Shown: positions 24,105 to 52,500 of the stretch, in pieces
Layout: each line of letters starts with the position of its first letter
How positions within the stretch are numbered: position 1 is the first letter of the stretch
Notes under the pieces: generated by a model
Databases searched by the model: none
Told to the model about the DNA's origin: nothing
The model's input: only the letters and a program-made list of their open reading frames with translations
Program-made: the position numbers and the translations under genes
Assembly: GCA_038087875.1 (NCBI GenBank)
Contig: JAXLNO010005773.1
Span: 1-64,000 of the forward strand
Direction: 5' to 3'
Source: Malacoraja senta
Taxonomy: Eukaryota
Length of the DNA: 64,000 bases

Positions 24105-25490
24105 TTTTAAAATTTATTTTAAATATTTTTATTAGAAGCATGTGCATATCATAATACAAACATTTCTTATATATCAATCCTACTTTGCTAATAGGTGGGA
24201 GTCCAGCTATCAAAATAATAGTGGTCCTCCTTTATCAATTGTATATTAAATCAGCTTCTATTTAGTTTTGTTTTATAGATAGAAAGTGAGAAATTTAAAA
24301 GCATGATAAAGAAGAATGGAATAATTTACCAATAATACAACTTTGGAGATAGGTCCGTAGGTTATAAAGCATAACTATTCATCTAATCCTGAGCTTGGAT
24401 TTCAGTCAGATTCCCGTGCTGAACCAATTTACCCTTTCAAAAAATCAATACATGGAGACCATATTCCATTAAATAATTCATGTTTGTCAATTAAGACAAG
24501 TCTAGTTCTTTCCAAATGTAAGGTCTCTGACATTTCCATAATCCACATTTTAATTGTGGGGTTTATAGGACCTTTCCAAAATTTTAATATTAATTTTTTC
24601 CCAATTATTATACTATAATCAAGAAAGCTTCTTTGGTTTATTGTAAGTCTTAGGCTTTGTTCTGATATTCCTAATATTATTAGTTTTGAGTCGGGATCCA
24701 ATTGGGTATTGACTACTTCAGAAATTATTCTGAAAATGTCCTTCCAGAAATTTTTGATTTTTATACAATTTACAAAGGTTAGCCTCTAAATGCTGGCATT
24801 TATCACAAATAGGAGAGATATGTGGGAAGATTCTATTTAATTTTGTTTAAGAATAATGTAATCTATGTAATACTTTAAATTGTATTAAGGCATGTCTGGC
24901 ATTTAACGAGCATTGATGTATATATTGTAGACTTTCGTCCCAAATATCTTTCGTTAAGGGTTGGCCTAATTCATTTTCCCATGTGTGTCTATATAAATCC
25001 GTTGGCAGGACCTCACTATCTAAGAGGGTATTATAAATATGAGATATTAATTTTTCTGTATTAGGATGTTTATTCAAACATTCATCAACGATTTCTGGTT
25101 CCCTAGTTCTGTAATCTTGTGTATTTGATTTAATGTAATCTCTAAGTTGTAAATATCTGAAAAAGTTATTTGAGTGTAGTCCGTAAATCTGTTGTAACTC
25201 CTGAAATGAAAGAAAAGTGCCTTTCCTATAAAGATGACCCTTCTTTTTAATTCCATAATTTTTCCATTGTGTAAAGCCTTTATCCAACATGGAAGGTTTG
25301 AATAAAGGGTTGTTTATAATGGGGAGACAGAGTGATAAATTATCCAATTTTAAAGTCTTTTTTAATTGTTTCCAAATTCGTATACCACTATATATTATAT
25401 GATTTTCACTATAGGTTTTTTAATGCAATTTTGTGGGAGCAAACATAATCGAACCAATTTCAAAAGCAAACAGTCTTTCACTATTTTGTA
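24105..25490 (-). mobile_element. L1-clade LINE 3' fragment (ORF2 C-terminal part), carrying the duplication start point at 24913
   Basis: NLSLCLPIINNPLFKPSMLDKG..FFRYLQLRD..ALIQFKVLHRLHYS is homologous to the L1 ORF2 at 58800-59400. Only the 24913-25490 part recurs, at 36253-36830. Confidence 0.88.
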
Positions 25491-26040
25491 TGATTCAATG
25501 AGGTCCCCCCTTATGCTTCTAAACTCCAGCAAGTACAGGCCCACTGACATCAAATGGTCATCATATGTTAACCCATTCATTCCTGGGATCATTCTTGTAC
25601 TCCTCTGGACCCTCTCCAGAGCCAGCACATCCTTCCTCAGATATGGTGCCCAAAATTGCTCACAATGCTCCAAATGTGGCTTGACTGGTGCCTTATAGAA
25701 CCTCAGCATTACATCCCTGTTTGACAGGGAGAAAATGCAATTGATGTCTTTCATATTAGTTAACCATGGATTTTCTTGACCACAGTTGACAGCCCCTAAT
25801 GGGATTGCATGTCTATCACACATCTCAAAAGAGCACAGCGTTAAGCTTCGAAGGGCAAAATTTACACGAGATGTGCAGGTCAAGTGTTTTTTTGCACAGA
25901 GAGAGCTTGATACCTAGAATGCGCTACCAGGAGTGGTGGTAGAGGAGGAAATGATAATGGTGCTTAAGAAAGTTTTGGACAGGCTCGTGGGTATGCAGGG
26001 AATACAAGAATATGGATCACATGCAGGCAGTGGAGATTAG
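25490..26040. mobile_element. Degenerate CR1 fragments in both orientations (duplicated at ~36830-37380)
   Basis: Minus strand gives VKPHLEHCEQFWAPYLRKD..GDLIESYKI; the plus strand carries a CR1 3'-end-like stretch at ~25830-26040. Confidence 0.7.
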
Positions 26041-26330
26041 TTTTGGTTTAGTTTAGAGAAACAGGAACCTTGGGCCACTGAGTCCACACTGACCAGCAAT
26101 TGCCCATTCACTATTTCTGTCCTACAAGCTAGGGACAATTTACAGAAGCCAATTAACCTGCATGTCTTTTGTATTTGGGAGGAAACCGGAGCCCCCAGAG
26201 AAAACCCACAGGGTGACAGAGAGAACGTACAAACTCCGTCCAGACAGCATTCTAGTCAGGATCAAACCCGGGTCTCTAATGCTGTAAGACAGCCACTCTA
26301 TCACTGTGCCTCTGTGTTGCCTTAGTTTAA
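26040..26330 (-). repeat. HE1/V-SINE-like SINE (copy at 37380-37670). Further members at ~23490-23760(-), 28645-28870(-), 29215-29340(+), 30295-30580(-), 35155-35485(-), their duplicates, and 46905-47200(-), 47340-47600(+), 48080-48310(+), 63812-64000(+)
   Basis: Shared core (reverse complement) GGAGTTTGTACGTTCTC...GGTTTCCTCCC..., TGTAAATTGTCCCTAG and a CTAAA-repeat tail. Boundaries are approximate. Confidence 0.75.
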
Positions 26331-28184
26331 CTTGGTATCCTGTTCCACATGGACATTGCAGGCTGAAAGTCCTGTTCTTGTACTGTTCTATGTTCTATAT
26401 ATTCTCATTGGACAGGGCAGGGATATGTTTTCCACTCCTCCAGCCTCCATGTTGAATACTTCATCCCAGTTTAAATCTGATTCAATTAGTCAATCCATTT
26501 CTCCCTCCGCTCCTGCCCTGCTCCCCATTCTATATTTTGAAGTAGTCATTCCCTTTTTCGCTCCCTGGTCTGTCTACTATCCCCACAACTTTCCTCTGCT
26601 TTCCTGTCTTGGTGCAAGCAACATCCATCCATTTACCACTTTCCATAGACCCAGGCAGTTCTTCAAAGTGAAACAGCGTGAAACACAAGCACTTCCAGTC
26701 AAATCTACTGCATTTAGTTTTCATTACGTAATCTTCCACAACGCATCAATGAAACAAATAGAATGGCTGCTTTCTGGAGAACCCGCATTCAATCCATGGG
26801 ACTTTCTAAGATTCCTAATTCCTGCCACTCTAATTCTCCATTCAACACCCACCATGATCCATCCATCTGTACCTCTTACACTAGGATAACAAGGGTGAAA
26901 GTAGCCTTGAGGACCAACAACTCAGCTTCTGTCTGGACATGTTGCAGCCTTTCAAACTCAATTCCACATTCAACGAGTTGCATTCCCTGTCGATAAAAGA
27001 ACTGGTCATTTCAACTGTTAAGTTGAAGACAGAAAGACAAGATGCAAGAAGTATGAAGCAGGATCCCAAGCTGAAACATTACGTAACCATGTCTTCCAGA
27101 TGCTGCCTGAACCACTGAGTTACACCTGCACGTTTTTGTGTTTTTTTTAATTACAGTTAAGTTATCCACCTGCCAAATCAGGACAGCCTGACCTACTTGA
27201 GTACTGCAGTATGTCTGCATTTTATATAACTCTGTTTAATTTCATGCATGCAGAGATGCAGTGAAATGGTTCGGATGGAACAGCAGATGCTGGACACCCC
27301 GTCCCTTCTCTCCAGAGATGCTGCCTGTCCCGCTGAGTTACTCCAGCTTTTTGTGTCTATCTGCAGTGAAATGGTTGTTCTGCATTCTCTCCAGTCAAGT
27401 CATACTGTACATAAGTACAATTCGTCCTCTTCTGGAAAAGCACGCAGAGATCCACCACATTTCAGGACTATCTTGCAGCTTCCAAGTCTCTGAAAAGTCT
27501 GATTTTGCCCCAAGGAAATACCCAATTTCTCATATTCTCATGTTAAGGCCCAGTGTCATAACAGCACTGGATTGATGAAGTAGAGGCGCCTGCCTCAGTT
27601 TAAGATTTTCTGTTTCAAGATGTGATCGAACCCTCGTCACTGGAATTGTGTCGCAGTGCCACCCATTACGTATCAGTCCCAATTATCTTTCAACATGCTG
27701 GAATCACTTGTTTTTTAATCCTTTTAGACTTTTTTTATGAATTGTTCAGCATAAACAGTTATGCTACAACAGTTAAGCCCAGCTACCACTTAGTTCCAGA
27801 GCCGGAACAACACAAGAGATAGTGTTGCAGGGCTCTCGCTTAACTTTTTTCCCCTGTTGCCAGCCGGGCAACCTCGGCAGCTTTTTAGGTTGCCAAATGA
27901 CAGCTTAGGTGGTCATTTAAGATGGCTTGCATGACGCGTGCGATAATGTGCTCGGATGAAGTGCGTAGATACCAGTCAGAATTATGGTCAATGAAACATT
28001 CACATATTATTTCTGCTTCAAATAAAGTCACAAACTAAACATATTCACCAATGAAGACATGATATATACCACAATGACATGCATCAAAATTACAATACAG
28101 TATCTCATCTATGTTTACACGTTGCAATGAATGCAATTTATATTATCTCTTTCCACTTCCAAACAAAAATATGGTTATTCAGCG

Positions 28185-28632
28185 TATGATCAACCTCGGT
28201 GAGACCAAGCGCAGGCATGGCGATCGCTTCGCACAACACCTCCACTCAGTTCGCAATAACCAACTTGATCTCCTGGTGGCTCAGCACTTCAACTCCCCCT
28301 CTGATTCCGAATCCGACCTTTCTGTTCTGGGCCTCCTCCATGGCCAGAGTGAGGCCCACCGCAAATTGGAGGAACAGCACCTCATATTTTGCTTGGGTAG
28401 TTTACACCCCAGCGGTATGAACATTGGCTTCTCCAATTTCAGATAGTCCTTGCTTTCTCCCTCCCCCTGCCTCCCATTCTCAGCTCTCCCACACCCTACT
28501 GTCTCTGCCTCTTCCTTTCTTTTTCGCCCCCCACCCCTCCCGACATCAGTCTGAAGAAGGGTCTCGACCCGAAACGTCACCTTTTTCCTTTGCTCCATAG
28601 ATGCTGCCTCACCTGCTGAGTTTTTCCAGCAT
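28185..28632 (+). mobile_element. Penelope-like element 3' fragment (GIY-YIG C-terminus and terminal repeat); duplicate at 39526-39973
   Basis: GETKRRHGDRFAQHL..LVAQHFNSPS..EEQHLIFCLGSLHPSGMNI, then CTGAAGAAGGGTCTCGACCCGAAACGTCACC. Confidence 0.88.
28551..28580 (+). ncRNA. Candidate minimal hammerhead-ribozyme core in a Penelope terminal repeat (duplicate 39892-39921)
   Basis: CUGAAGA-A-GGGU(CUCG)ACCC-GAAAC-GUC: both conserved core boxes, a stem II and a palindromic ACGU stem III. Only about 2 bp of stem I are evident. Confidence 0.45.
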
Positions 28633-31334
28633 TTGTGTCTACCCATTCACACAAGTTCTGTTATCCCACTTTCCTCACCCACTCCTGCACATTAGGGGCA
28701 ATTTTACAGAGACAAGTTAACCTACAAAGCCAATGCGTCTTTGGGATGTGGGAGGGAACCCACATGATTGCAGGGAGAATGTGCAAATTCAACACAGACA
28801 GTGCCCGAGAACAGGATCGAACACAGGTCTCTGGCGTGTGAGGCAGCAAATCCACCAGCTGTGCCATTATATTTTATTTTCCAACACACAAAAAATTATA
28901 CGTTGATAACTTTGGTTACTAAAAAAAAGAAACTATCCATTTTCAGTCTTAAATCTCTAAGTGACGCTATGTCCCACTTTACAGCTACTGTATGCTTAAA
29001 TCAGTTCAAGGATATTGGGGCAGTACATTGCCCATAAATTGGCTGCCTAATATTGCCAGAGACCCAGAATTGATCCTGAATATGGGTGCTGTCTGTGTGG
29101 AGTTTTGTTTTCTCGTTTATAACATTGTTTACAGAGTACTATGTTTACATATTCTGTTGTGCTGCTGCAAGTGAGGATTTCATTGTTCTAACTGGGACGT
29201 GAGAGAATAAAACAGTCTTGACTTACGTTGCTGATGTGTGGGATAGAACTAGAGTACGGGTGATCGGTGGTCGGCGTGGACTCAGTGGGCCGAAGGGCCT
29301 GCTTCCACACTGTATCTTTAAATTAAACTAAAAACACTAAAACCAGAGGAAATGTAAAGAAGGGTTTCTACCAGAAATGTCACCCAATTTTTTCTATCCA
29401 GAGATGCTGGCTGCTCCATGGAGTTCCCCCGCACAATTAAAGCATGGAATAGTTGTCACCCTACTATAGGTACCCAACCAGACGCAACTAAATTTAAGGT
29501 CGTTTTTTTCCCCCAAGAACCCTTTTTTGCTTAAGTCCAAGTCAAGAGTCAAGAGAGTTTTATTGTCATGTGTCCCAGATAGGACAATGAAATTCTTGCT
29601 TGCTGCAGCACAACAGAATATGTAAACATAATACAGAACAGGAGATAAAAGTTCAGTGTGTCTCTATACTATAGACCATATATATACACAATAAATAAAC
29701 GGATAAAATGCAATAGGCTGTTATTTTTCAGTTTGGAGTTTGGTGGTGGTGGGTCCACCAGTTTAAATTCCATTTCGAATATTTTTGGAGGACCTGGAAA
29801 CCAAGAAGCAAGACTTACTCCAGCTGAGGCAGCGACCGGACAGCAATGGCGGCCAGAACTCCCACAATGCAAAGGGAGGGAGAAAGTGGCCGACGCCGAC
29901 CAGTTCCCGTGGCAGTGCGCATGTGCAGGGCTCGGCGGCCGGCCTTGCTGAGCGGAGACCCGAGACCTGGACACGGATGGCGGGCGGGCGGGTGTCCCGG
30001 TTGCTTGCCAAGCCGGGCAAAATGGCATGGCTTTTAGGTTGCCATTGGCACCGGGCAACAGCTAATTTCGAGCCCTGTGTTGGAAAAATGATCAAACTCA
30101 CACATAGTGGTTAAAATCCATAGTCTTTTATTAGTAACTCTGCAGAGGAAACACAAGGTGCTTTCTTCTCAGCATGCTTACTACCAGTCTACCCGAGAGA
30201 GAGAGAGAGCTGTCTAACAAGCCTGTGGGCGGAGCCACAGTATGAGTGACACTAATCTACAGATAGGCACAGGGATAAGTTTCGGTTTATTATTGTCACG
30301 TTTAGTTTCGAGGTAAAGCATGGAAATAGGCCTTTTGGCCCACTGAACCTGTGCTGACTAACGACCACCCAAATATTAGTTCTATCCTACACACTAGGGA
30401 CAATTTACAGAAGCCAAAAAACTTACAAACCTGCACTTCTTTGAATGTGACGGAACTGTAACACCCGGAGATAACTCACATGGTCACAGGGAGAATATAT
30501 GAACTCTATATAGACAGCACCCATTGTCAGGATTGAACTTTGGTCTGTGGTACTGTAAGGCAGCAACTTTCCAGGTACAGTTCCATGATATCCAATTGGA
30601 TGAGATAACGACATACATATATATGATCAAGTCAACTCAAGTACTGTAGGTAGAGCAAAGGGGAAGGTACAGACTGTGGCATATAGTTCTCAGCAATGTA
30701 GCACACCAGTTCCATTAGATATGAGTTTCGACTCAAAACGTAACACATTCCTTCTCTCCAGAGATGCTGCCTGACCCGTTGAGTTACTCTAGTATTTTGT
30801 GTCTATCTGCGGTTTAAACCAGCATCTACAGTTCCTTCCTGCATAGTTCCATAAACAAAGTCCACTGTCTGTAATGGGGTAGTGGTCAATTGGACAGAAC
30901 CCTAGCTTATGGAACGATCATTCAGAAGCCTGATTTTCTCCTCGGTTATCAAGTTTCCGAGTAAGCCATTTGGTCCTCTAACCTGCCCACCATTCAATAT
31001 GACCATGGCTGACGTTCCTCAGGCATCAACTCCTGATCGGTGCCAGTTCCTCATTGCACTCAATTCTCCAATCTTTCAAAAGTTTAACTACCGCCACATT
31101 AAATACTTCCAATGATTTTGTCTTCACAAATCTCTGGGGTCAAGAGCGCCAGAGAATGACCACACTCTGCAAAAAGAGATTTTGTAAACAAATGACTGGT
31201 CTCTTTTATCTCTTATTGAAGAGGAGAGAAAATACTGCCAATTTTAAGCTTGTCCCCTCCCCAATTGACCCTCATTTCATAACATGTCAATTATTTATTA
31301 TTGTCAATAATATGCCATAGTGAAAAGATTTGCC

Positions 31335-31680
31335 GTTGGTATTAGTTTATTGTTGTCACGTGAACTGAGATATAGTCAAAAGTGTGTCTGTGTTATCCAA
31401 TCAGATCATACTACACATGTGCAATCAAGCCATCCACAAGTAGAACAGTGCCAAGAAAAAAATACTCAGAGTGCAGAATATCGGGTTACAATATCATAGC
31501 ATTACAGTTACAGAGAAAGTGCAGATCAAAAAGAGTTGCAAGGATCACAATGAGATTGGTTGGAAGATCAGGGCAACATCTTATCTTACATGAGAATCAT
31601 CCAGTAGTCCAATAACAGCGGGGAAGAAGCTGTTCCTGAATTTAATGGTACGTGCTTTCAAACTTTCTTGTGTACTGTCT
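31335..31680 (-). mobile_element. Rex1/Babar-like LINE 3' remnant (duplicate ~42675-43020)
   Basis: The reverse complement reads ..KARTIKFRNSFFPAVI, a typical Rex1 C-terminus. Confidence 0.6.
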
Positions 31681-31857
31681 TAACAGGGAGCGTACAATCC
31701 CTTTTAAACCACGTGGTTGGTTGATGGTGACGAAAGAGGCAAAATGGGGCAGATGTAGACAGTAACTTGGTGGTTGTAGTAGACTGAAGAATATTTTGTG
31801 TTGGGTGACTGTGCAAGTTTTACTGAAGATGAAAATAACCATCTTACTGTCTTGTAG

Positions 31858-32124
31858 TTTCCCCTGAGGTCACTCTCGCTGCCCGCCCTGATGATCATTC
31901 AGTCCTGTACTGCACTGTGTTTGGATTTTACCAACCGGCCATCAATGTCAGCTGGTTGCAGAATGGTCAACATGTCTCTGAGACCAAATCTTCTGGGGTC
32001 ACACCCAACAACGATGGAACATATCATCTAAAGTCTGTCCTTCAGTATGATCCGTATGATGGGAAACAGTATTCCTGTCATGTCGATCACAGGAGCCTGC
32101 CCGGTGGGAAGACCATCATCTGGG
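31858..32124 (+). CDS. MHC class I-like alpha-3 (Ig C1) exon, copy 1 (267 bp, phase 1/1)
   Basis: The acceptor is TCTTACTGTCTTGTAG| and the donor |GTAAGA. It encodes VSPEVTLAARPDDHSVLYCTVFGFYQPAINVSWLQNG..GVTPNNDGTYHLKSVLQYDPYDGKQYSCHVDHRSLPGGKTIIW and joins in frame to the alpha-2 exon (G+TT = Val). Confidence 0.93.
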
Positions 32125-32469
32125 GTAAGAACGTTAAATATTCTTTCATAGATAATCATTATCTTCTGTTGTATCCATTTTAACCATTGTGACTACATCC
32201 CATATTCCAAGATGCTTAAACTTTCTTTGTTTAGTGGTGTTGCTCTAAGCAATCACATAATCAGCACCCACTCTCCACATGAGCAGAAGACTTTGTCAAC
32301 AGAACATTTATCAAAAATAAATAAATAACTAATATACAAGGAAGGAGTATTTGAGATTCTCAGTGGTGGAACTGAAATCCATGAAAGGTATGCTTAAATA
32401 ATAAATGAATCTTTCCTCATGATGTGATTAACAGCAAGGCACTGGGGGAGTACATGCCCCAATGCGAAT

Positions 32470-33150
32470 CAGTGGTCCAAAGTGGAAATGATTGAGAGCT
32501 TTGTGTTCCTTGGCATGAATATATCCAATATTCGGTCATGGACTGGCCACATAGCCAAGGGGGCACACCGACACCTCTACTTCCTCAGGAGACTGAGAAT
32601 ATTCATCATGTCTCTGGTGACTCCAGCAAACATCTATAGATGCTGCTAGAGACAGCATGTTGTTGGGTTGCATCACATCTTGATTTGGGAACTGCACTGC
32701 CCAAGACTGCAAGAATATACAAAGAGTTAAAGATCATCACACAGGCCAGACTTCCCACTATTGATGGTTGCCTTGGAAACCGAGACGTATCCCACCCCGG
32801 TCATTCCTCCTTCCTGCTCCCATCAGGCAATAGGTACAGAAAATTGAAAATATGCACTGCCAGACTCAGGAACACCCCCTTTCCATCTCTTATCAGGCTT
32901 CAGAAGGGTCCTTCCATAATGTAGGTTTAATGCCCGATTCACCTCAACCTCATTGCACATTGAACATTGTCTATGGAACTGATGCGTTACAATGCTGAGA
33001 ACTATATTCTGTACTCTGTATCCTCCTCTTTGCTCTATCTATTGTTTTTTAGTTTTTTATTTATCTATAGTATTATCTAATTTGTTTGGATAGCATACAA
33101 AACAAACCTTTGCACTATCTTGAAACATCTGGCATTAATAAAACTAAACC
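32470..33150 (+). mobile_element. Rex1/Babar-like LINE 3' fragment (duplicate ~43810-44490)
   Basis: VEMIESFVFLGMNIS..AHRHLYFLRRLRIF..GCITS.FGNC and ARLRNTPFPSLIRL motifs. Confidence 0.7.
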
Positions 33151-33616
33151 TAATGAAGTAAGTTCTGTGACGCAAGTTACAGCTTCAGCAACAAAAAAAT
33201 ATAACTGCCTGACAAACAGCGATCGTAGTAGTTTGATTCCAGGTATGCTGCACTAACCCACACAAATGTTCACTTTTGAAGATTCCCTCGAACAATGCAC
33301 AAATAAGGAATCTGATGTTTCACTCTGAAGACTGTTGACATACTCCAGAACTTAATTTTCAACCTATCTATGTATCATCAGCAATCTAGGCTACAGCACC
33401 ACCAGGCCCTTCATCTGCTCTTAATACCAACGATAAGTAGTTCACTTTCTTGCAATGATTCCCATCCTGCAGTTGCAGTTTCCCAACTTAAACACTCCTT
33501 TAAGACTCTGCTTGCTCTTAATTGTTTTTCCATTCATGCTAATTATTACCCCCAATGTCATAAGCCATTTGCCTTTGCATCACTTGATCAGATAACTTAT
33601 GAAAATCCAGATATTC

Positions 33617-33686
33617 TGGCGACATCTGGTGGTCAGGCCACTTATTGCTAGAACCCTCGTCACGGGAGCTGGGACTATCACGTGAC
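33617..33686. promoter_or_regulatory. Candidate CTCF site (33617-33635, minus strand) and ATCACGTGAC E-box (33677-33686); duplicate at 44957-45026
   Basis: The reverse complement TGACCACCAGATGTCGCCA is close to the CTCF consensus TGGCCACCAGGGGGCGCTA. This is a motif match only. Confidence 0.35.
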
Positions 33687-34810
33687 AGGGTTTTGGTGGG
33701 AGTTGGTGATGAGTTAATCGCCAGTCAACTGGTGTGCCCGATAACAACGGCAGGAACTTTGCTCAAGTCCTTACTAAACGCGAGTGGGCCAAAACTGTAT
33801 TTCTTAAAAAAACATTGATTTGTTCACGACGCTTGGATCTCTACAATATATTGTATTTCTTTTGTTTCTCATTCCAATTTTGTTACCTATTCTGCTTTTC
33901 CATCATTTTGTTTTTAAATTTTAGGCTGTGCACACCTGCAAACTACTGCTGCTCAAATATACATTGTCTACGGGTTCCTGTTGCATTTTCAAAGAATTCT
34001 AATCAATTTCTCAAACAAAGTTTGAAGAAGGGTCCGTAAACGAAATGTCACCTGTCCATGTGTAGGGAGAAATTGCAAATGCTGGTATACACCGAAGATG
34101 GACACAAATTGCTGGAATAACTCAGCTGGTCAGGCAGCATTTCTGGAGAAAAGGAATAGGTGATGTTTCGGGTCACGATCCTTCTGACTGAGTCCATGTT
34201 CGCCAGAGATGTTGCCAGTTACTCCAGCATTTTGTGTCTATCATGTATATTCTTTCCACTGACTGGTTAGCATGAAACAAAAGCTTTTCACTGCACCTCA
34301 GTACTCGTGACAATAAACGAAACTAAAGCTTTTGTATAAATCAGTATCTGCATCTCTTTCTTTCTACAATTTTCCTGTTAATGCACTTTATTGTTTTGTT
34401 ATTACTTAAATGTTCTGCCATTACTGAAAGGAATCCAACATTTTCCCCAAAACAGATGATAGTTTATATAGGGTTAAAGCTTTCTGCTTTCAATTCACCT
34501 TCTTTCTTGAATTAAGTTGTGGCTGTGATGGTGCCATAGATCATAGAGTTGTACAGAACATATATTGTCCCTTTGCCATGTTGCAGAATTCCATGATTCA
34601 AAACAACATATTTATATATGTTGAAAAGTGCCAAAGATAGACACAAAATGCTGGAGTAACTCAGTGGTCAGGTAGCATCTCTTGAGAAAAGAAATAGGAG
34701 GCATTTCGGGTCGAGACCCTTCTTCACCCTGAAGTCTTCAGACAGTGCCAATCTATTTAGCTGCACAGCTTAACAAATGATATGTAAAATTATGCATTCT
34801 TATTTTTCAG

Positions 34811-34918
34811 AAGGAAATGGGAAGAAAGACAGGCACATAGGCCTTATTGCCGTGTGTGTGCTGATATTGCTGGCTATTGTCTTGGCAGTAATTGTTTGGT
34901 GGAGAAAAAAGAGGAGAG
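34811..34918 (+). CDS. MHC class I-like connecting peptide/transmembrane exon, copy 1 (108 bp, phase 1/1)
   Basis: The acceptor is TTCTTATTTTTCAG| and the donor |GTAAGA. It encodes EGNGKKDRHIGLIAVCVLILLAIVLAVIVWWRKKRR, a hydrophobic span followed by a basic stop-transfer cluster. Confidence 0.85.
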
Positions 34919-37900: not shown

Positions 37901-39168
37901 CTCCCTGGTCTGTCTACTATCCCCACAACTTTCCTCTGCTTTCCTGTCTTGGTGCAAGCAACATCCATCCATTTACCACTTTCCATAGACCCAGGCAGTT
38001 CTTCAAAGTGAAACAGCGTGAAACACAAGCACTTCCAGTCAAATCTACTGCATTTAGTTTTCATTACGTAATCTTCCACAACGCATCAATGAAACAAATA
38101 GAATGGCTGCTTTCTGGAGAACCCGCATTCAATCCATGGGACTTTCTAAGATTCCTAATTCCTGCCACTCTAATTCTCCATTCAACACCCACCATGATCC
38201 ATCCATCTGTACCTCTTACACTAGGATAACAAGGGTGAAAGTAGCCTTGAGGACCAACAACTCAGCTTCTGTCTGGACATGTTGCAGCCTTTCAAACTCA
38301 ATTCCACATTCAACGAGTTGCATTCCCTGTCGATAAAAGAACTGGTCATTTCAACTGTTAAGTTGAAGACAGAAAGACAAGATGCAAGAAGTATGAAGCA
38401 GGATCCCAAGCTGAAACATTACGTAACCATGTCTTCCAGATGCTGCCTGAACCACTGAGTTACACCTGCACGTTTTTGTGTTTTTTTTAATTACAGTTAA
38501 GTTATCCACCTGCCAAATCAGGACAGCCTGACCTACTTGAGTACTGCAGTATGTCTGCATTTTATATAACTCTGTTTAATTTCATGCATGCAGAGATGCA
38601 GTGAAATGGTTCGGATGGAACAGCAGATGCTGGACACCCCGTCCCTTCTCTCCAGAGATGCTGCCTGTCCCGCTGAGTTACTCCAGCTTTTTGTGTCTAT
38701 CTGCAGTGAAATGGTTGTTCTGCATTCTCTCCAGTCAAGTCATACTGTACATAAGTACAATTCGTCCTCTTCTGGAAAAGCACGCAGAGATCCACCACAT
38801 TTCAGGACTATCTTGCAGCTTCCAAGTCTCTGAAAAGTCTGATTTTGCCCCAAGGAAATACCCAATTTCTCATATTCTCATGTTAAGGCCCAGTGTCATA
38901 ACAGCACTGGATTGATGAAGTAGAGGCGCCTGCCTCAGTTTAAGATTTTCTGTTTCAAGATGTGATCGAACCCTCGTCACTGGAATTGTGTCGCAGTGCC
39001 ACCCATTACGTATCAGTCCCAATTATCTTTCAACATGCTGGAATCACTTGTTTTTTAATCCTTTTTAGACTTTTTTCATGAATTGTTCAGCATAAACAGT
39101 TATGCTACAACAGTTAAGCGCAGCTACCACTTAGTTCCAGAGACGGAACAACACAAGAGATAGTGTTG

Positions 39169-41418
39169 CAGGGCTCTCGCTTAACTTTTTTCCCCTGTTG
39201 CCAGCCGGGCAACCTCGGCAGCTTTTTAGGTTGCCAAATGACAGCTTAGGTGGTCATTTAAGATGGCTTGCATGACGCGTGCGATAATGTGCTCGGATGA
39301 AGTGCGTAGATACCAGTCAGAATTATGGTCAATGAAACATTCACATATTATTTCTGCTTCAAATAAAGTCACAAACTAAACATATTCACCAATGAAGACA
39401 TGATATATACCACAATGACATGCATCAAAATTACAATACAGTATCTCATCTCTGTTTACACGTTGCAATGAATGCAATTTATATTATCTCTTTCCACTTC
39501 CAAACAAAAATATGGTTATTCAGCGTATGATCAACCTCGGTGAGACCAAGCGCAGGCATGGCGATCGCTTCGCACAACACCTCCACTCAGTTCGCAATAA
39601 CCAACTTGATCTCCTGGTGGCTCAGCACTTCAACTCCCCCTCTGATTCCGAATCCGACCTTTCTGTTCTGGGCCTCCTCCATGGCCAGAGTGAGGCCCAC
39701 CGCAAATTGAAGGAACAGCACCTCATATTTTGCTTGGGTAGTTTACACCCCAGCGGTATGAACATTGGCTTCTCCAATTTCAGATAGTCCTTGCTTTCTC
39801 CCTCCCCCTGCCTCCCATTCTCAGCTCTCCCACACCCTACTGTCTCTGCCTCTTCCTTTCTTTTTCGCCCCCCACCCCTCCCGACATCAGTCTGAAGAAG
39901 GGTCTCGACCCGAAACGTCACCTTTTTCCTTTGCTCCATAGATGCTGCCTCAGCTGCTGAGTTTTTCCAGCATTTGTGTCTACCCATTCACACAAGTTCT
40001 GTTATCCCACTTTCCTCACCCACTCCTGCACATTAGGGGCAATTTTACAGAGACAAGTTAACCTACAAAGCCAATGCGTCTTTGGGATGTGGGAGGGAAC
40101 CCACATGATTGCAGGGAGAATGTGCAAATTCAACACAGACAGTGCCCGAGAACAGGATCGAACACAGATCTCTGGCGTGTGAGGCAGCAAATCCACCAGC
40201 TGTGCCATTATATTTTATTTTCCAACACACAAAAAATTATACGTTGATAACTTTGGTTACTAAAAAAAAGAAACTATCCATTTTCAGTCTTAAATCTCTA
40301 AGTGACGCTATGTCCCACTTTACAGCTACTGTATGCTTAAATCAGTTCAAGGATATTGGGGCAGTACATTGCCCATAAATTGGCTGCCTAATATTGCCAG
40401 AGACCCAGAATTGATCCTGAATATGGGTGCTGTCTGTGTGGAGTTTTGTTTTCTCGTTTATAACATTGTTTACAGAGTACTATGTTTACATATTCTGTTG
40501 TGCTGCTGCAAGTGAGGATTTCATTGTTCTAACTGGGACGTGAGAGAATAAAACAGTCTTGACTTACGTTGCTGATGTGTGGGATAGAACTAGAGTACGG
40601 GTGATCGGTGGTCGGCGTGGACTCAGTGGGCCGAAGGGCCTGCTTCCACACTGTATCTTTAAATTAAACTAAAAACACTAAAACCAGAGGAAATGTAAAG
40701 AAGGGTTTCTACCAGAAATGTCACCCAATTTTTTCTATCCAGAGATGCTGGCTGCTCCATGGAGTTCCCCCGCACAATTAAAGCATGGAATAGTTGTCAC
40801 CCTACTATAGGTACCCAACCAGACGCAACTAAATTTAAGGTCGTTTTTTTCCCCCAAGAACCCTTTTTTGCTTAAGTCCAAGTCAAGAGTCAAGAGAGTT
40901 TTATTGTCATGTGTCCCAGATAGGACAATGAAATTCTTGCTTGCTGCAGCACAACAGAATATGTAAACATAATACAGAACAGGAGATAAAAGTTCAGTGT
41001 GTCTCTATACTATAGACCATATATATACACAATAAATAAACGGATAAAATGCAATAGGCTGTTATTTTTCAGTTTGGAGTTTGGTGGTGGTGGGTCCACC
41101 AGTTTAAATTCCATTTCGAATATTTTTGGAGGACCTGGAAACCAAGAAGCAAGACTTACTCCAGCTGAGGCAGCGACCGGACAGCAATGGCGGCCAGAAC
41201 TCCCACAATGCAAAGGGAGGGAGAAAGTGGCCGACGCCGACCAGTTCCCGTGGCAGTGCGCATGTGCAGGGCTCGGCGGCCGGCCTTGCTGAGCGGAGAC
41301 CCGAGACCTGGACACGGATGGCGGGCGGGCGGGTGTCCCGGTTGCTTGCCAAGCCAGGCAAAATGGCATGGCTTTTAGGTTGCCATTGGCACCGGGCAAC
41401 CGCTAATTTCGAGCCCTG
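39169..41418. mobile_element. Duplicate of the CAGGGCTC/TGTTG element
   Basis: Same termini and TSD at offset 11341. Confidence 0.7.
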
Positions 41419-43198
41419 TGTTGGAAAAATGATCAAACTCACACATAGTGGTTAAAATCCATAGTCTTTTATTAGTAACTCTGCAGAGGAAACACAAGGT
41501 GCTTTCTTCTCAGCATGCTTACTACCAGTCTACCCGAGAGAGAGAGAGAGCTGTCTAACAAGCCTGTGGGCGGAGCCACAGTATGAGTGACACTAATCTA
41601 CAGATAGGCACAGGGATAAGTTTCGGTTTATTATTGTCACGTTTAGTTTCGAGGTAAAGCATGGAAATAGGCCTTTTGGCCCACTGAACCTGTGCTGACT
41701 AACGACCACCCAAATATTAGTTCTATCCTACACACTAGGGACAATTTACAGAAGCCCAAAAACTTACAAACCTGCACTTCTTTGAATGTGACGGAACTGT
41801 AACACCCGGAGATAACTCACATGGTCACAGGGAGAATATATGAACTCTATATAGACAGCACCCATTGTCAGGATTGAACTTTGGTCTGTGGTACTGTAAG
41901 GCAGCAACTTTCCAGGTACAGTTCCATGATATCCAATTGGATGAGATAACGACATACATATATATGATCAAGTCAACTCAAGTACTGTAGGTAGAGCAAA
42001 GGGGAAGGTACAGACTGTGGCATATAGTTCTCAGCAATGTAGCACACCAGTTCCATTAGATATGAGTTTCGACTCAAAACGTAACACATTCCTTCTCTCC
42101 AGAGATGCTGCCTGACCCGTTGAGTTACTCTAGTATTTTGTGTCTATCTGCGGTTTAAACCAGCATCTACAGTTCCTTCCTGCATAGTTCCATAAACAAA
42201 GTCCACTGTCTGTAATGGGGTAGTGGTCAATTGGACAGAACCCTAGCTTATGGAACGATCATTCAGAAGCCTGATTTTCTCCTCGGTTATCAAGTTTCCG
42301 AGTAAGCCATTTGGTCCTCTAACCTGCCCACCATTCAATATGACCATGGCTGACGTTCCTCAGGCATCAACTCCTGATCGGTGCCAGTTCCTCATTGCAC
42401 TCAATTCTCCAATCTTTCAAAAGTTTAACTACCGCCACATTAAATACTTCCAATGATTTTGTCTTCACAAATCTCTGGGGTCAAGAGCGCCAGAGAATGA
42501 CCACACTCTGCAAAAAGAGATTTTGTAAACAAATGACTGGTCTCTTTTATCTCTTATTGAAGAGGAGAGAAAATACTGCCAATTTTAAGCTTGTCCCCTC
42601 CCCAATTGACCCTCATTTCATAACATGTCAATTATTTATTATTGTCAATAATATGCCATAGTGAAAAGATTTGCCGTTGGTATTAGTTTATTATTGTCAC
42701 GTGAACTGAGATATAGTCAAAAGTGTGTCTGTGTTATCCAATCAGATCATACTACACATGTGCAATCAAGCCATCCACAAGTAGAACAGTGCCAAGAAAA
42801 AAATACTCAGAGTGCAGAATATCGGGTTACAATATCATAGCATTACAGTTACAGAGAAAGTGCAGATCAAAAAGAGTTGCAAGGATCACAATGAGATTGG
42901 TTGGAAGATCAGGGCAACATCTTATCTTACATGAGAATCATCCAGTAGTCCAATAACAGCGGGGAAGAAGCTGTTCCTGAATTTAATGGTACGTGCTTTC
43001 AAACTTTCTTGTGTACTGTCTTAACAGGGAGCGTACAATCCCTTTTAAACCACGTGGTTGGTTGATGGTGACGAAAGAGGCAAAATGGGGCAGATGTAGA
43101 CAGTAACTTGGTGGTTGTAGTAGACTGAAGAATATTTTGTGGTGGGTGACTGTGCAAGTTTTACTGAAGATGAAAATAACCATCTTACTGTCTTGTAG

Positions 43199-43465
43199 TT
43201 TCCCCTGAGGTCACTCTCGCTGCCCGCCCTGATGATCATTCAGTCCTGTACTGCACTGTGTTTGGATTTTACCAACCGGCCATCAATGTCAGCTGGTTGC
43301 AGAATGGTCAACATGTCTCTGAGACCAAATCTTCTGGGGTCATACCCAACAACGATGGAACATATCATCTAAAGTCTGTCCTTCAGTATGATCCATATGA
43401 TGGGAAACAGTATTCCTGTCATGTCGATCACAGGAGCCTGCCCGGTGGGAAGACCATCATCTGGG
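43199..43465 (+). CDS. MHC class I-like alpha-3 exon, copy 2
   Basis: Same splice sites as copy 1. It differs by GVTPNN>GVIPNN (ACA>ATA) and one silent change (CCG>CCA). Confidence 0.9.
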
Positions 43466-46150
43466 GTAAGAACGTTAAATATTCTTTCATAGATAATCAT
43501 TATCTTCTGTTGTATCCATTTTAACCATTGTGACTACATCCCATATTCCAAGATGCTTAAACTTTCTTTGTTTAGTGGTGTTGCTCTAAGCAATCACATA
43601 ATCAACACCCACTCTCCACATGAGCAGAAGACTTTGTCAACAGAACATTTATCAAAAATAAATAAATAACTAATATACAAGGAAGGAGTATTTGAGATTC
43701 TCAGTGGTGGAACTGAAATCCATGAAAGGTATGCTTAAATAATAAATGAATCTTTCCTCATGATGTGATTAACAGCAAGGCACTGGGGGAGTACATGCCC
43801 CAATGCGAATCAGTGGTCCAAAGTGGAAATGATTGAGAGCTTTGTGTTCCTTGGCATGAATATATCCAATATTCGGTCATGGACTGGCCACATAGCCAAG
43901 GGGGCACACCGACACCTCTACTTCCTCAGGAGACTGAGAATATTCATCATGTCTCTGGTGACTCCAGCAAACATCTATAGATGCTGCTAGAGACAGCATG
44001 TTATTGGGTTGCATCACATCTTGATTTGGGAACTGCACTGCCCAAGACTGCAAGAATATACAAAGAGTTAAAGATCATCACACAGGCCAGACTTCCCACT
44101 ATTGATGGTTGCCTTGGAAACCGAGACGTATCCCACCCCGGTCATTCCTCCTTCCTGCTCCCATCAGGCAATAGGTACAGAAAATTGAAAATATGCACTG
44201 CCAGACTCAGGAACACCCCCTTTCCATCTCTTATCAGGCTTCAGAAGGGTCCTTCCATAATGTAGGTTTAATGCCCGATTCACCTCAACCTCATTGCACA
44301 TTGAACATTGTCTATGGAACTGATGCGTTACAATGCTGAGAACTATATTCTGTACTCTGTATCCTCCTCTTTGCTCTATCTATTGTTTTTTAGTTTTTTA
44401 TTTATCTATAGTATTATCTAATTTGTTTGGATAGCATACAAAACAAACCTTTGCACTATCTTGAAACATCTGGCATTAATAAAACTAAACCTAATGAAGT
44501 AAGTTCTGTGACCAAGTTACAGCTTCAGCAACAAAAAAATATAACTGCCTGACAAACAGCGATCGTAGTAGTTTGATTCCAGGTATGCTGCACTAACCCA
44601 CACAAATGTTCACTTTTGAAGATTCCCTCGAACAATGCACAAATAAGGAATCTGATGTTTCACTCTGAAGACTGTTGACATACTCCAGAACTTAATTTTC
44701 AACCTATCTATGTATCATCAGCAATCTAGGCTACAGCACCACCAGGCCCTTCATCTGCTCTTAATACCAACGATAAGTAGTTCACTTTCTTGCAATGATT
44801 CCCATCCTGCAGTTGCAGTTTCCCAACTTAAACACTCCTTTAAGACTCTGCTTGCTCTTAATTGTTTTTCCATTCATGCTAATTATTACCCCCAATGTCA
44901 TAAGCCATTTGCCTTTGCATCACTTGATCAGATAACTTATGAAAATCCAGATATTCTGGCGACATCTGGTGGTCAGGCCACTTATTGCTAGAACCCTCGT
45001 CACGGGAGCTGGGACTATCACGTGACAGGGTTTTGGTGGGAGTTGGTGATGAGTTAATCGCCAGTCAACTGGTGTGCCCGATAACAACGGCAGGAACTTT
45101 GCTCAAGTCCTTACTAAACGCGAGTGGGCCAAAACTGTATTTCTTAAAAAAACATTGATTTGTTCACGACGCTTGGATCTCTACAATATATTGTATTTCT
45201 TTTGTTTCTCATTCCAATTTTGTTACCTATTCTGCTTTTCCATCATTTTGTTTTTAAATTTTAGGCTGTGCACACCTGCAAACTACTGCTGCTCAAATAT
45301 ACATTGTCTACGGGTTCCTGTTGCATTTTCAAAGAATTCTAATCAATTTCTCAAACAAAGTTTGAAGAAGGGTCCGTAAACGAAATGTCACCTGTCCATG
45401 TGTAGGGAGAAATTGCAAATGCTGGTATACACCGAAGATGGACACAAATTGCTGGAATAACTCAGCTGGTCAGGCAGCATTTCTGGAGAAAAGGAATAGG
45501 TGATGTTTCGGGTCACGATCCTTCTGACTGAGTCCATGTTCGCCAGAGATGTTGCCAGTTACTCCAGCATTTTGTGTCTATCATGTATATTCTTTCCACT
45601 GACTGGTTAGCATGAAACAAAAGCTTTTCACTGCACCTCAGTACTCGTGACAATAAACGAAACTAAAGCTTTTGTATAAATCAGTATCTGCATCTCTTTC
45701 TTTCTACAATTTTCCTGTTAATGCACTTTATTGTTTTGTTATTACTTAAATGTTCTGCCATTACTGAAAGGAATCCAACATTTTCCCCAAAACAGATGAT
45801 AGTTTATATAGGGTTAAAGCTTTCTGCTTTCAATTCACCTTCTTTCTTGAATTAAGTTGTGGCTGTGATGGTGCCATAGATCATAGAGTTGTACAGAACA
45901 TATATTGTCCCTTTGCCATGTTGCAGAACTCCATGATTCAAAACAACATATTTATATATGTTGAAAAGTGCCAAAGATAGACACAAAATGCTGGAGTAAC
46001 TCAGTGGTCAGGTAGCATCTCTTGAGAAAAGAAATAGGAGGCATTTCGGGTCGAGACCCTTCTTCACCCTGAAGTCTTCAGACAGTGCCAATCTATTTAG
46101 CTGCACAGCTTAACAAATGATATGTAAAATTATGCATTCTTATTTTTCAG

Positions 46151-46258
46151 AAGGAAATGGGAAGAAAGACAGGCACATAGGCCTTATTGCCGTGTGTGTG
46201 CTGATATTGCTGGCTATTGTCTTGGCAGTAATTGTTTGGTGGAGAAAAAAGAGGAGAG
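46151..46258 (+). CDS. MHC class I-like TM exon, copy 2
   Basis: Identical to 34811-34918 by eye, with intact AG/GT. Confidence 0.85.
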
Positions 46259-49059
46259 GTAAGATGGAAAAATTGTGATGAACTGTTGCTAGTAAAGGTA
46301 TTGGGCTTGAAGAAATGATCGATCTCAAGTAGGATAAGGCAGCAGCTACACTTCAAATGCTTCGACAGTCACCACTGTCAACTAGCCTTTGTGCTGTTGT
46401 TAAATGTTTCTGATGATCAGATATTTGAAAATTGTGAATTCAGTGTAAAAAAAAAAGTTAAACATTATGGATTCACTGCACCAAATCCTAGAGATATCAT
46501 TGAGTCATTAAAAAGTACAGCATGGAAGCAGTCCTTTCGGCCCACCGTGTCCATGCCAACCACCAACCACCTGTTCTCATGAATTCTATCTCATTGCACC
46601 TTCTCATCCAGTCACCCACCCACTAGGGGCAATTTACAGTGGCCAATTAAACTATAAACTGACACATCTTAGGATGTGTGAGGAAACCGGAGCCCCTGGA
46701 GGGATCCAATGCGGTTACACGGAGAACGTGCAAACTCCACATAGATGGCACTCAAGGTCAAAATTGAACCCGGGTCTGTGTCGCAGTGAGGCAGCAGCTC
46801 TACCAGTTGTGACACTGTGCTGCTCTGTTGGGGGCTCGCACTGTTCATGATCCAAGTCAGTTACGAGGCAGATTGGTTGCAGTTTAACATTTACTAGTTT
46901 TGTTTAGTTTAATTTAGAGATACAGTGACGAAACAGGCCCTTCGGCCCATCGAGTCTGCGCTGACCAGTGATCCCCGCACATTAACACTATCCTACACAC
47001 ACACACACACCATGCCAATTAACCTACATACCTGTACGTCTTTGGAGTGTGGGAGGAAACCTTAGATCTCGGAGAAAACACACGCGGTCATGGGGAGAAC
47101 GTACAAACTCTGTACAGACAGCATCAGTAGTCGGGATCGAACCCGGGTCTCCGGTGCTGCAAGCGCTGTAAGGCAGCAACTCTACTGCTGCACACAGTAG
47201 CTGCCACCAAGGCCGCTGTTGCTGGAAGACTCTATGTTTCTATGACTCAAAATTAAGTGGGAATGTGAGTAGTGGGAGAAATGGTTCAAAGTGGAAAGTC
47301 GAATGAATGAGCAACAACATGACAGGTGGACTACAATGTGAAACAGGGCAGCACTGAGTCAGAGACCTTAATTAAATACCGACATCTGTGGAGTTTGCAT
47401 GTAGTTCCTGTGACCATGTGCGTTTCCCCAGGTGCTCTGGTTTCCTCCCACATCCCCAAAACATGGTTTGGAGGTTAGTTGTCCCTGGATTGTGCATGAT
47501 ACAATGTGGGGAGAGCTGATGAGAATGTAGGACAAATGTAGGATTAGTGTACATGAATGGTTGGTGCACGTCAGTGGGACAAAGGCCATGTTTATATATT
47601 TCCATGACTCTTTATGATGTAGATGCTGACTATTTTTGAATTATAAGATTGGAAAAGACTGTGAGGGATGGTGCTAGAGTAACTCAGCAGGTCAGGCAAC
47701 ATATAGGTGACATTCTGGTTCGAGACTCTTCAGGCAAATTACAATGGGTATTCCTCCGCTTAAGTCTGAAAGTAGTGCACAGATGCACCTCGACCACTGA
47801 CGTGCTCAACAAGTGCCCCAATGAGTTGAATTAAAGTATGTTTGGAGTAACATGCAGCAGTCCTTAAAATCTACAATTTCCTAAATCCCAAGAGAGCTGG
47901 ATGATCAGGGTTTTAGTGTAAATTCAGTCATCTATATCACTGGTTTCTTGCCTGTGATCACACTGTTGTAAGATATATTCTGGTGATGAATTGCAGTTAA
48001 CTTTCCTCCTGTGTAAAGGAGTTATTGTGTTGAATATAACAAGTGGAAGGGAAAGTCAGTGTAGGATTTAGAGTTTGTATGTAATGCAGCATGGTAGTGC
48101 AGCTGGTAGAACTGCCTCACAACGCCTGAGACCCAGGTTCAATCTGGACCTCGGGCACTGTCTACGTGGAGTTTGCACAGGTGTGCAGGTAATCATCCTC
48201 GGTAAGTCACCCTGACAGTGTAGGGGGTGGATGGGAAATCTATTATGAATGGGTGATTGCTGGTTAGTATGGATTTGGCGGCACAAATGGCCTGTTTACA
48301 CACTGTATCACTGTTTTCAAGAGAGAGTTAGATTTAGCTCTTAGGGCTAAACGAATCAAGGGATATGGGGGAAAAGCCAGATCGGAGTACTAATTTTAGA
48401 TGATCAGCCATGATTGTATTGAATGGCGGTGCTGGCTCAAAGGGCCGAATAGCCTATTCCTGCACCTATTTTTTTATGTTTCTATCTTTCTATTAAATAA
48501 ACTATATTGGAAGACAGAAGGTATTGACTGATGCATCTTCACGCCAGCTGTAAATGTCATAAACTGAGAATTGATTGCAAATGTTATACAATATTATAAA
48601 CTAAACTGGGTGATCAAAATGTCAAGATGGATGAAGAGCAGAGTTTTCATTGAAATAACAGACGTGCTGCTTTCTCGAGCACTTGGCCTTGGTTGTGTAA
48701 TATTTCCTCTTCAAAATACAATGTTCCCTGGCATTGCTGGTCTGAGACACCATTCAGCAAGTATATTTCCTGAAACGGAGGTTATGCTTTCATGGTATCA
48801 AGATGCCTAACAGCTCCAGCACCCAGATCAGAACCAAGTCATTTCTCACCTTGCCAAAACTAAGAATGCAGCAACAATTTAGTCATTGAACATCAACTAC
48901 ATGCATATTTGAACTGAGGCAATGGTTAGCTTATTATCACTGTAAACCAGTCATGGTCATGGGTCTGCCATTGTGGTCACTATTAGTGAGGGTGATTAAC
49001 TGTCATTTAGCAGTGAAACGGAAAAGAATTGGCTTTTCAAGCCCACGGAGCCATAGAGT

Positions 49060-49587: not shown

Positions 49588-52500
49588 TTTCTTTTAAAAT
49601 CTTTTTATTGTTTTTTTTCCAAAAAACAAAAACAAAAATAAAACATAAAAAACAGAGCAAAAAGAATAATGATAAACATAACAATGGTATTGATACATAG
49701 GGATCAGGATTACATTAATAACAGGTATAAACTAATATGAGACCAGTGTCAAAATACCCAATGAATATAGACCTCTCCGTCTCTATGTAAATATAGTTAA
49801 ATCTTTAAAAGGAAACATAAATGTTTAAAAAAAAGCAAAGATAAAAAGACAAAAAGAAAAACGAAAACAAAACCCCCCTAAACTAAAAAAAAATTAAAAA
49901 AATTGGATAATAATAAAATAAGAATAAAAATAAAATAAATAAATAAAAACAAAACAGAGCAAACCCGAATCTGAACTGAGAAATTCAACAATTTAAGTCT
50001 GTTTGTCGTCAAGTCCGTTCCACTCTATGAAGGTAAAATAATTTTTATAACGGTTAAAGAGGGAACAATTTATGTTGTATGAAAGTGTTCAATAAATTTT
50101 CCCCAAGTCTTATCAAATTTAACCAAGGGTTCAACAATGTCACCTGATTTTTTCTAAATTTAAACATGATATCGTTTCAGAATACCACTGGAGTGTGGTC
50201 GGAGGGTTGGAATCTTTCCATTTAATGAAAATAAATCTTCTGGCAATTAATGTGGTAAAAGCAATCAACCGATGGGCGGAGTGGGACAAATGAATAGAAT
50301 CTAACATTGGTAACCCAAAAATTGCAGTAATAGGATGAGGTTGTAAATCTATACCTAAGACTACCGAAATAGTATCAAAAATTTATTTCCAATATTTTTC
50401 CAAAAGAGGGCAGGACCAAAACATATGGGTCAGTGATGCCACTTCAGAGTTACATCTGTCACAGGTAGGATTTATATGACCATAAAAACGAGCTAACTTA
50501 TCTTTTGACATATGAGCTCTGTGAACCACCTTCAATTGTATCAAAGTGTGTCTTGCACACATTGAAGAGGTATTAACTAATTGAAGGATCCTCTCCCATT
50601 TCTCTATAGATAAAGAAATTTGGAGTTCTCTTTCCCAGTCATTCTTAATTTAATCAAATGTATCTATTTGTAATTTTAAAATCAACTCATGAATAGTCGT
50701 TATTAATCCTTTCTGATAAGGGTTCAACTGTAAAAAAAAATCCAAAATTTCGGGTTGATGTGGTAGCGGAAAAAGAGGTAGTTCCTTTTGTCTAATTTGT
50801 AAATATCTAAAAAAGTGTGAATTAGGTAAGTTATATTTATTGGAGAGTTGTTCGAAAGACATAAAACAACCCTCCAAAAACAAATCACGAAAAGCTACTA
50901 ATCCCTTCCTCTTCCATAACAAAAAAACTTGATCAGTACTAGATGGTTGGAAGAGAAATTTGGATAACATCAGATAGTCCAAAAAACTTATGAAATTGAA
51001 ACCGTATTCGGAACGTATGTCTTATTATTGGGTTCATCATATATTTATTCAATCTCGTAATTGTAAAAGGTAACGAGGTCCCTAGAATAGAAGCCAATTA
51101 TAGCCCTTGTAAGGAATCACGTTCTAGGTTTATCCATCCAGGGCATTGGGTATCTTCTAAATCTTTTGTCCAAAATGTTAAATAACGAACATTGACTGCC
51201 CAATAGTATAGTCTACGGTTCGGCAATGCCAAACCACCAACTTTTTTTGATTTCTGTAGGTATTTTTTACCTAGTCTGGCATTTTTATTCTGCCATATAT
51301 ATGAAGAAATTTTAGATCTATAATATCAAAGAAAGATTTGGCAATAAAAATTGGTATCGTCTGAAATAAATACAGAAATTTAGGTAAAATGAACATTTTA
51401 ATAGTATTGATTCGGCCAATTAAGGATAAGGACATTGGTGACCATTTAGTGAACTGATGTTTAATATGGTCAATTAAAGGAATAAAATTAGCTTTAAATA
51501 AATCCTTGTGTTTCTTGGTGATCTTAATACCTAAATAAGTAAAACTTTCGGTAGTCAATCTAAATGGAAACTGTCCATAACTCGAAACAAAATTATATAA
51601 TGGGAAAGCTCACTCTTACTAAGATTTAGTTTATAACCAGAAAAACTACTGAATTGATTAAGTAATGCTACTATTGCCGGAATAGATTTCTCAGGGTTAG
51701 AAATAAATAATAACAGATCATCTGCATAAAGAGATAGCTTATGTGTCTTATTCCCGCGGACAATACCAAAAATATTAGGGGATTCCCTAATAGCAGTGGC
51801 TAAAGTTTCCAAAGCAATATCAAATAGTAAAGGACTTAAGGGACAGCCCTGTCTAGTACCTTGAAAGAGCCTGAAAAAGGGGGATCTCTGATTATCAGTA
51901 AATACAGAAGCCTGAGGTATAAGATATAGCAGTTTGATCCAAGAGATAAATTTTGGACCAATCTTAACTTTTTCAAGTATATTGAATAAGTATTCCATTC
52001 TACTCTATCAATAGCCTTCTCGGCATCAAGTGAGATGACACTTTCTGGGGTTTTATTAGACGCTGTATATACAATATTTATTAATCTCCTAACATTAAAG
52101 AATGAGTAACGATTTTTAATAAAACCTGTCTGATCTTCAGAGATAATTTGCAGTAAAATCTTTTCCAATCTCATAGCTAATATTTTGGAAAGAATTTTAA
52201 AATCTACTTTTAACAGTGATATAGGTCTATATGATGTCACTTCAGTAGGGGCTTTATCTTTTTTTTAAATTAAAGAAATAGAAGCTTCATAAAAAGATTG
52301 TGGTAATCTATTCCTTAAAAAGGCTTCTTTAAATACCTTGCATAGCCATGGAGACAATAAATTTGAGAAATGCTTTAAAAATTCTACTGTAAACCCATCT
52401 AAACCGGGAGCTTTACCAGAATTCATTGAAAAAATTGCTTTCTGTATTTCTTCTTCCGTGATGGGTTCATCTAACAACAGAGACTCATTGTATGGTAAAT

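Follow-up and report, generated by a model that had tools for sequence, protein, structure and literature searches.

A non-classical major histocompatibility complex (MHC) class I gene of the skate Malacoraja senta contains, in its assembled sequence, a tandem duplication of about 11.3 kb that leaves the alpha-2 exon single and doubles both the alpha-3 exon and the connecting-peptide/transmembrane (TM) exon, giving the order alpha2 - alpha3 - TM - alpha3' - TM'. The gene lies in positions 1 to 64,000 of contig JAXLNO010005773.1 (assembly GCA_038087875.1), a stretch of 64,000 nucleotides (nt) with zero N anywhere that is referred to below as the window. The explanation that best fits the data as a whole, to which we assign a probability of roughly 0.6, is a genuine and very young 11.3-kb duplication in one copy of the gene that is neutral to damaging in its effect.

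Extent of the duplication and divergence of the copies

Self-BLAST of the window and pairwise alignment of the copies revealed one long direct repeat, with its copies oriented head-to-tail (coordinates refer to the plus strand unless stated otherwise). Positions 24913-35642 match 36253-46982 over 10,731 nt at 99.74% identity, with 26 mismatches and two one-base indels, and positions 35639-36260 match 47461-48083 over 623 nt at 99.5% identity. An origin by chance is impossible for an 11-kb match at 99.7%. The duplicated unit measures ~11,340 nt: copy 1 occupies 24913-36252 (11,340 nt) and copy 2, which begins at the junction 36252|36253, occupies 36253-48083 (11,831 nt, including a 479-nt block at 46983-47460 that is confined to this copy). 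Between the copies there are, in total, 28 substitutions, three indels of one base each and the 479-nt block. A preliminary description of this DNA had proposed an intragenic tandem duplication that excludes alpha-2 and copies alpha-3 and TM, a proposal borne out by self-BLAST, pairwise comparison and exon mapping, and its coordinates (junction near 36255, end at 48077) agree within a few ambiguous bases with 36252|36253 and 48083.

The differences between the copies include one local cluster. Four of the 31 small differences fall within 80 nt at 27722-27802; three of these are substitutions, all derived in copy 1, and the cluster may have arisen by gene conversion over a short tract or by a single mutation of several bases.

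The duplicated exons are intact and in frame

Exon definition by translation, Pfam and tblastn with relatives placed five exons on the plus strand of the window. The alpha-2 exon (23165-23440, 276 nt) is present once, upstream of the duplicated unit, matches Pfam MHC_I (PF00129) with an E value of 5.5e-13 and 49.3 bits against a cut-off of 28.3, and keeps both cysteines of the conserved disulfide pair (GC...DC). The alpha-3 exon of copy 1 (31858-32124) and the alpha-3' exon of copy 2 (43199-43465), each of 267 nt, match the C1-set family (PF07654; E 8e-19 and 5.5e-19, respectively) and likewise keep both cysteines. The TM exon of copy 1 (34811-34918, 108 nt), located by a hydrophobicity scan, tblastn with orthologues and a family alignment, encodes the C-terminal residues WWRKKRR and has the same sequence as the TM' exon of copy 2 (46151-46258, 108 nt), both exons thus ending with the strongly positive flank RKKRR.

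All five exons have acceptors with AG behind a pyrimidine tract and donors that read GTAAGA or GTGAGT, and the splice signals are the same in both copies, as expected from the preliminary description, which had reported intact splice sites. That description had also stated that all of these exons are phase 1/1 and that any combination would therefore splice in frame; the phases proved correct, and five exon combinations spliced by script were all open and in frame. The single-residue difference that it had noted between the alpha-3 copies corresponds to position 32002 (C/T), which encodes Thr in copy 1, the derived state, and Ile in copy 2, the ancestral state. One silent base (32054, G/A) differs as well.

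Apart from the spliced forms, read-through of the alpha-3 donor (32125-32183, also 43466-43524) yields GKNVKYSFIDNHYLLLYPF followed by a stop. GKNVKYSFIDNHYLLLYPF nearly matches the C-terminus of an annotated 311-residue Leucoraja model (P0157) and resembles a 298-residue Rhinoraja model (P0180). The read-through may represent a conserved secreted isoform produced by intron retention, or may merely reflect the ~90% identity of the introns. Such a soluble form, if real, would escape the effect of the duplication.

The gene belongs to the elasmobranch lineage of PDB 9CH4

A full HMMER scan with the alpha-2 exon identified 92% identical proteins in Leucoraja erinacea and Amblyraja radiata, and a further search identified members of the same lineage in Rhinoraja longicauda, where they form a 10-member set (~10 genes), and in rays and sharks, where they are single genes; none of these proteins is identical to the window gene. 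The closest solved structure to alpha-2 is chain A of PDB entry 9CH4 (70% identity, E 6e-34, the next best match being 8e-12), and the Amblyraja orthologue is 63% identical to 9CH4 across the entire ectodomain, compared with ~30-40% for MR1 and classical class I. The best library matches to the window gene all come from one family of proteins in skates, rays and sharks, and by these matches the gene is a member of the non-classical elasmobranch class I lineage of 9CH4. Reviews mention two CD1-like elasmobranch lineages with crystal structures, UFA and UGA, and give neither sequences nor PDB codes for them (PMC10751288, PMC12562908). The 9CH4 molecule is probably one of these two. A full-text literature search for the code 9CH4 and the lineage names found no tie between 9CH4 and a name, returning only reviews that name UDA, UEA, UFA and UGA with no sequence key.

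Orthologues of the gene have six coding exons, encoding the leader, alpha-1, alpha-2, alpha-3, TM and a 13-residue tail, DYQNI(P/Q)PNQNVPC. In the window, tblastn with three orthologues and a fuzzy six-frame search for the tail peptide found no leader, alpha-1 or tail exon. Positions 63127-64000 are intron DNA colinear with the Amblyraja stretch just before the tail exon (86587-87226 of that locus, with the tail exon at 87707-87745), and the tail exon of the window gene should, by this colinearity, lie ~0.5 kb past the window end. Since colinearity with two other skates puts the tail exon just beyond the window, the duplication is wholly contained in the transcription unit, flanked by alpha-2 on one side and the tail exon on the other. 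RKKRR closes both TM exons of the window gene, and in the orthologues the corresponding residues continue into a tail with a Tyr-x-x-Ile motif (RKKRR-DYQNI).

At the other end of the gene, the question arises whether this copy was already a decaying paralogue, or pseudogene, before it was duplicated, in which case the duplication would have no protein consequence. The family alignment holds some evidence of this kind: both alpha-3 copies read FYQ instead of the invariant FYP (Pro to Gln) and HRSL instead of HSSL (Ser to Arg), and alpha-2 has Met in place of an invariant Leu. In addition, the 23 kb upstream of alpha-2 contain neither leader nor alpha-1 and hold 13.6 kb of stacked Tx1 long interspersed nuclear elements (LINEs) together with other transposons. 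However, the unusual substitutions are few, and every exon in the window is open and has good splice sites. The missing alpha-1 exon is also to be expected off-window, because the alpha1-alpha2 intron of the Amblyraja gene, which spans 77.7 kb, is already 11.3 kb long and 13.6 kb of Tx1 sequence has been inserted here. A pseudogene that predates the duplication is unlikely. The unusual residues amount to faint hints of relaxed constraint on this paralogue.

Two other skates carry a single alpha-3 and a single TM

The orthologous loci of Amblyraja radiata (L001; XP_032898133.1) and Leucoraja erinacea (L002; LOC129716032) served as outgroups. They resemble the window gene in exon set, exon order, phase-1 exons and large transposon-filled introns, with exons that are 87-92% identical to those of the window and introns that are colinear and 88-90% identical, and their TM exons end in RKK(R/N)RR before the 13-residue tail. 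They differ from it in having one alpha-3 and one TM each, where the window gene has the block twice, and a long internal repeat is absent from both loci. In each outgroup there is one stretch with which both window copies are colinear, at 88-90% identity. The single alpha-3 and TM of both outgroup skates indicate that the duplication is derived in the window's lineage and recent. Head-to-tail copies, one novel junction and a single copy in the outgroups together form the pattern left by a real tandem duplication.

The outgroups also polarise the differences between the copies. The 479 nt absent from copy 1 are present in both outgroup skates, which shows that copy 1 underwent a deletion; the deletion site, at 35639-35642, is marked by ACAT microhomology. 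When polarised with Amblyraja, eight changes are derived in copy 1 and eight in copy 2, a split that fails to separate paralogues from alleles. Substitutions separate the copies by ~0.25% and the window from Amblyraja by ~6.8%, which, provided that the copies are paralogues, would give the event about 1/27 the age of the window-Amblyraja split. The transition:transversion ratio of the copy differences (11:17, versus ~1.0 between species) was considered as a possible error signature, and no inference was drawn from it, as the difference is not significant (p ~0.3).

As a separate observation on the Leucoraja locus, RefSeq models of 574-663 residues join the class I gene to a downstream GPR139-like seven-transmembrane receptor via a read-through exon after TM. 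These fusion models are probably an annotation chimera.

Breakpoints point to joining at microhomology

The DNA ahead of the unit is ...GAGCA|TTGATGTATAT, that at the junction ...TAGAGT|TTGATGTATAT and that following copy 2 ...TAGAGT|TTGTATGTAAT. At the junction of unit end and unit start (36250-36255), identity between the breakpoints is limited to TTG, common to both, and to ATGTA after a one-base offset. Sensitive BLAST of 2 kb around each breakpoint found no extended homology between them, giving only chance matches of at most 22 nt, and non-allelic homologous recombination between repeats is ruled out by this result. The breakpoints are what would be expected of end joining, or of template switching during replication, at sites of microhomology, and such processes are the usual source of simple tandem duplications.

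The left breakpoint (24913) lies within the alpha2-alpha3 intron, the right one within the intron between TM and the tail. The left one falls inside a LINE fragment at 24107-25475 on the minus strand, which we take, from our own inspection of its open reading frame (ORF), to be L1/Tx1-like. This fragment has no counterpart in either outgroup locus, where the flanks are contiguous or occupied by other insertions, and its ORF (24847-25347, minus strand), which resembles the C-terminal part of ORF2, has diverged copies at 58827-59324 and 50506-50970. Because the left breakpoint lies inside a LINE that the outgroups lack, the LINE insertion preceded the duplication. We propose that an 11.3-kb segment inside one copy of this skate gene was duplicated by non-homologous, microhomology-type joining, and that the order of events would have been LINE insertion, duplication and then deletion in copy 1.

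A genuine duplication or an assembly artefact

The alternative to a genuine duplication is that two haplotypes of a heterozygous 11.3-kb stretch, or two paralogous stretches, were placed in series during assembly and that the true gene has one alpha-3 and one TM. Several observations weigh on the side of this alternative. The duplication is known from assembled sequence, and two alleles at one locus would look much the same, with 0.26% divergence and one 479-nt indel between them; the even split of derived changes is compatible with alleles as well. Multi-copy families such as this one are error-prone in assembly, and copy 2 begins within a LINE fragment, a typical site of contig breaks. Two further points weigh against the favoured explanation as a whole: the leader, alpha-1 and tail exons are off-window, and the predictions of splicing and topology given below come from general knowledge (exon definition and the positive-inside rule) rather than from data on this gene.

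The junction itself argues the other way. It contains no assembly gap, and a gap-free join of non-homologous sequence requires an overlap assembler to have had reads containing the junction, which argues against two concatenated haplotypes. In an assembly graph, moreover, no edge leads from where one arm of a heterozygous bubble ends to where its other arm begins. Real tandem duplications typically join non-homologous sequence at short microhomology, here 3 nt, and a junction of this kind is difficult for an overlap assembler to generate. We therefore regard an artefact as rather unlikely and a genuine duplication as probable. A 183-residue ORF spans 36252|36253; an exact look-up and a word search of its junction part in public assemblies were blank, a result that is uninformative.

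Predicted transcript and protein

With a genuine duplication, the transcription unit would read alpha2 - alpha3 - TM - alpha3' - TM' - tail. Repeated exons in intragenic tandem duplications are usually all included in the mRNA, as exon definition would have it. Because the splice signals of the two copies are identical and nothing directs a choice between them, inclusion of all four duplicated exons is expected, and the main mRNA would contain them in frame. Its product, alpha1-alpha2-alpha3-TM-RKKRR-alpha3'-TM'-RKKRR-tail, would exceed the normal length by 125 residues. The outer part of this protein (alpha1 to alpha3) would stay normal, and the first anchor would act as a stop-transfer segment, its RKKRR facing the cytosol. 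The second immunoglobulin (Ig) domain would then sit in the reducing cytosol, where no disulfide would form, and the second anchor would either cross the membrane with five positive charges on the wrong side or remain out of the membrane. Such a four-exon product is likely to be mis-inserted or degraded. The duplication is thus more likely to garble the protein than to create a new design, and the allele is best read as a structural variant, neutral to damaging in effect, of a multi-copy gene family that evolves by birth and death, rather than as an evolved architecture.

A more constructive outcome would require that the duplication is used, with regulated splicing that picks either the Thr or the Ile form of alpha-3, or that joins alpha3-alpha3'-TM' into a form with two Ig domains and a longer stalk. 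The phase 1/1 exons, which keep every combination in frame, and the integrity of both copies, which have no stop and no splice defect, are compatible with this idea, although intactness is uninformative at 0.26% divergence. We nevertheless consider such use very unlikely, as these forms demand precise skipping of one or two exons and no signal distinguishes the copies: their splice sites are identical, and the nearest differences precede alpha-3 by 57 nt and TM by 222 nt. Furthermore, the sole amino-acid difference resembles drift. The site is Leu, Val or Ile in 24 of 24 relatives in the family alignment, indicating that the Thr of copy 1 is derived and non-conservative at an always-aliphatic position. 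A search for alpha-3 transcript fragments and full-length relatives returned no protein of Malacoraja senta. Of the splice products listed in the preliminary description (two near-equivalent normal forms, a form with tandem Ig domains and a two-TM form), all are in frame when spliced by script, but the normal and two-Ig forms that it favoured need specific exon skipping for which there is no directing signal. Its suggestion of an unusual MHC class I architecture caught early in evolution found no support from expression or selection.

Known parallels and significance

The shark 9CH4 molecule is the nearest relative with a structure, sharing 70% identity with the window alpha-2, and the two represent one lineage conserved in sharks and rays. 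To our knowledge, no duplicated alpha3-TM block has been described in this lineage. In-frame exon-skipping isoforms are common in class I genes, for example HLA-G, and intragenic tandem exon duplications are a known disease type, for example in DMD. The skate gene resembles both in that symmetrical phase-1 exons keep skipping or repetition in frame; both precedents are mammalian.

When the full-text literature was searched for class I genes carrying two alpha-3 domains, the one case to emerge was a pseudogene of the saltwater crocodile, which has an additional alpha-3 domain and lacks alpha-1 (PMC4263668). As in the skate gene, the extra alpha-3 exon arose by partial duplication in a birth-and-death cluster. 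In contrast to the skate gene, whose visible exons are intact and whose TM is also doubled, the crocodile sequence has no alpha-1 and no TM duplication described. The lineage of the gene was already known and the mechanism of mutation is a common one; the novelty lies in the layout, with the alpha3-TM block doubled in a class I gene that otherwise looks intact.

If real, the duplication offers a clean and datable case of how class I genes acquire partial duplications, in a cartilaginous-fish family that is expanding under birth-and-death evolution, with readable breakpoints, a readable order of events and a product that is in frame yet topologically awkward. Because class I genes are built of symmetrical phase-1 exons, such accidents can be translated and so become raw material for new domain layouts. 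Most likely, the duplication is a private or polymorphic variant of one paralogue, and taken alone it opens no long-standing question. Were it fixed and expressed, either placing a tandem pair of Ig domains between groove and membrane or offering Thr and Ile alternatives of alpha-3, it would provide a first natural case of a class I heavy chain that extends or diversifies its stalk by exon-block duplication; we regard this outcome as highly improbable. The locus also marks a spot in the assembly that merits comparison with reads.

Other repeats in the window

Upstream of alpha-2, two tandem copies of ~6.5 kb (2520-9000 and 8989-15467), 97.9% identical and with a long minus-strand ORF, form a stacked pair of Tx1 LINEs that occupies much of the presumed alpha1-alpha2 intron. 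Also in the intron upstream of alpha-2, a run of plus-strand ORFs at 18905-20600 resembles a decayed hAT/ZBED-type transposase, with a BED-finger-like start and a hAT dimerisation-like end. Three plus-strand fragments (21542-22195, 28111-28446 and 39512-39787; 80-83% DNA identity) share a GIY-YIG-like motif (ETKRRxGDRFAEH...), as found in Penelope-like elements; one lies in each duplication unit and one upstream.

Downstream of the duplication, a LINE-like element of ~5.7 kb at 53840-59570 is 84% identical, in inverted orientation, to positions 54357-59754 of L001, which lie in the Amblyraja alpha2-alpha3 intron, and the two elements, which belong to one family, inserted independently into this gene in each of the two skates. 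Finally, a 1.2-kb repeat pair (362-1546 and 61558-62746; 93% identity) has several copies at 92-95% in the Amblyraja and Leucoraja loci, and is a young and abundant skate repeat family.

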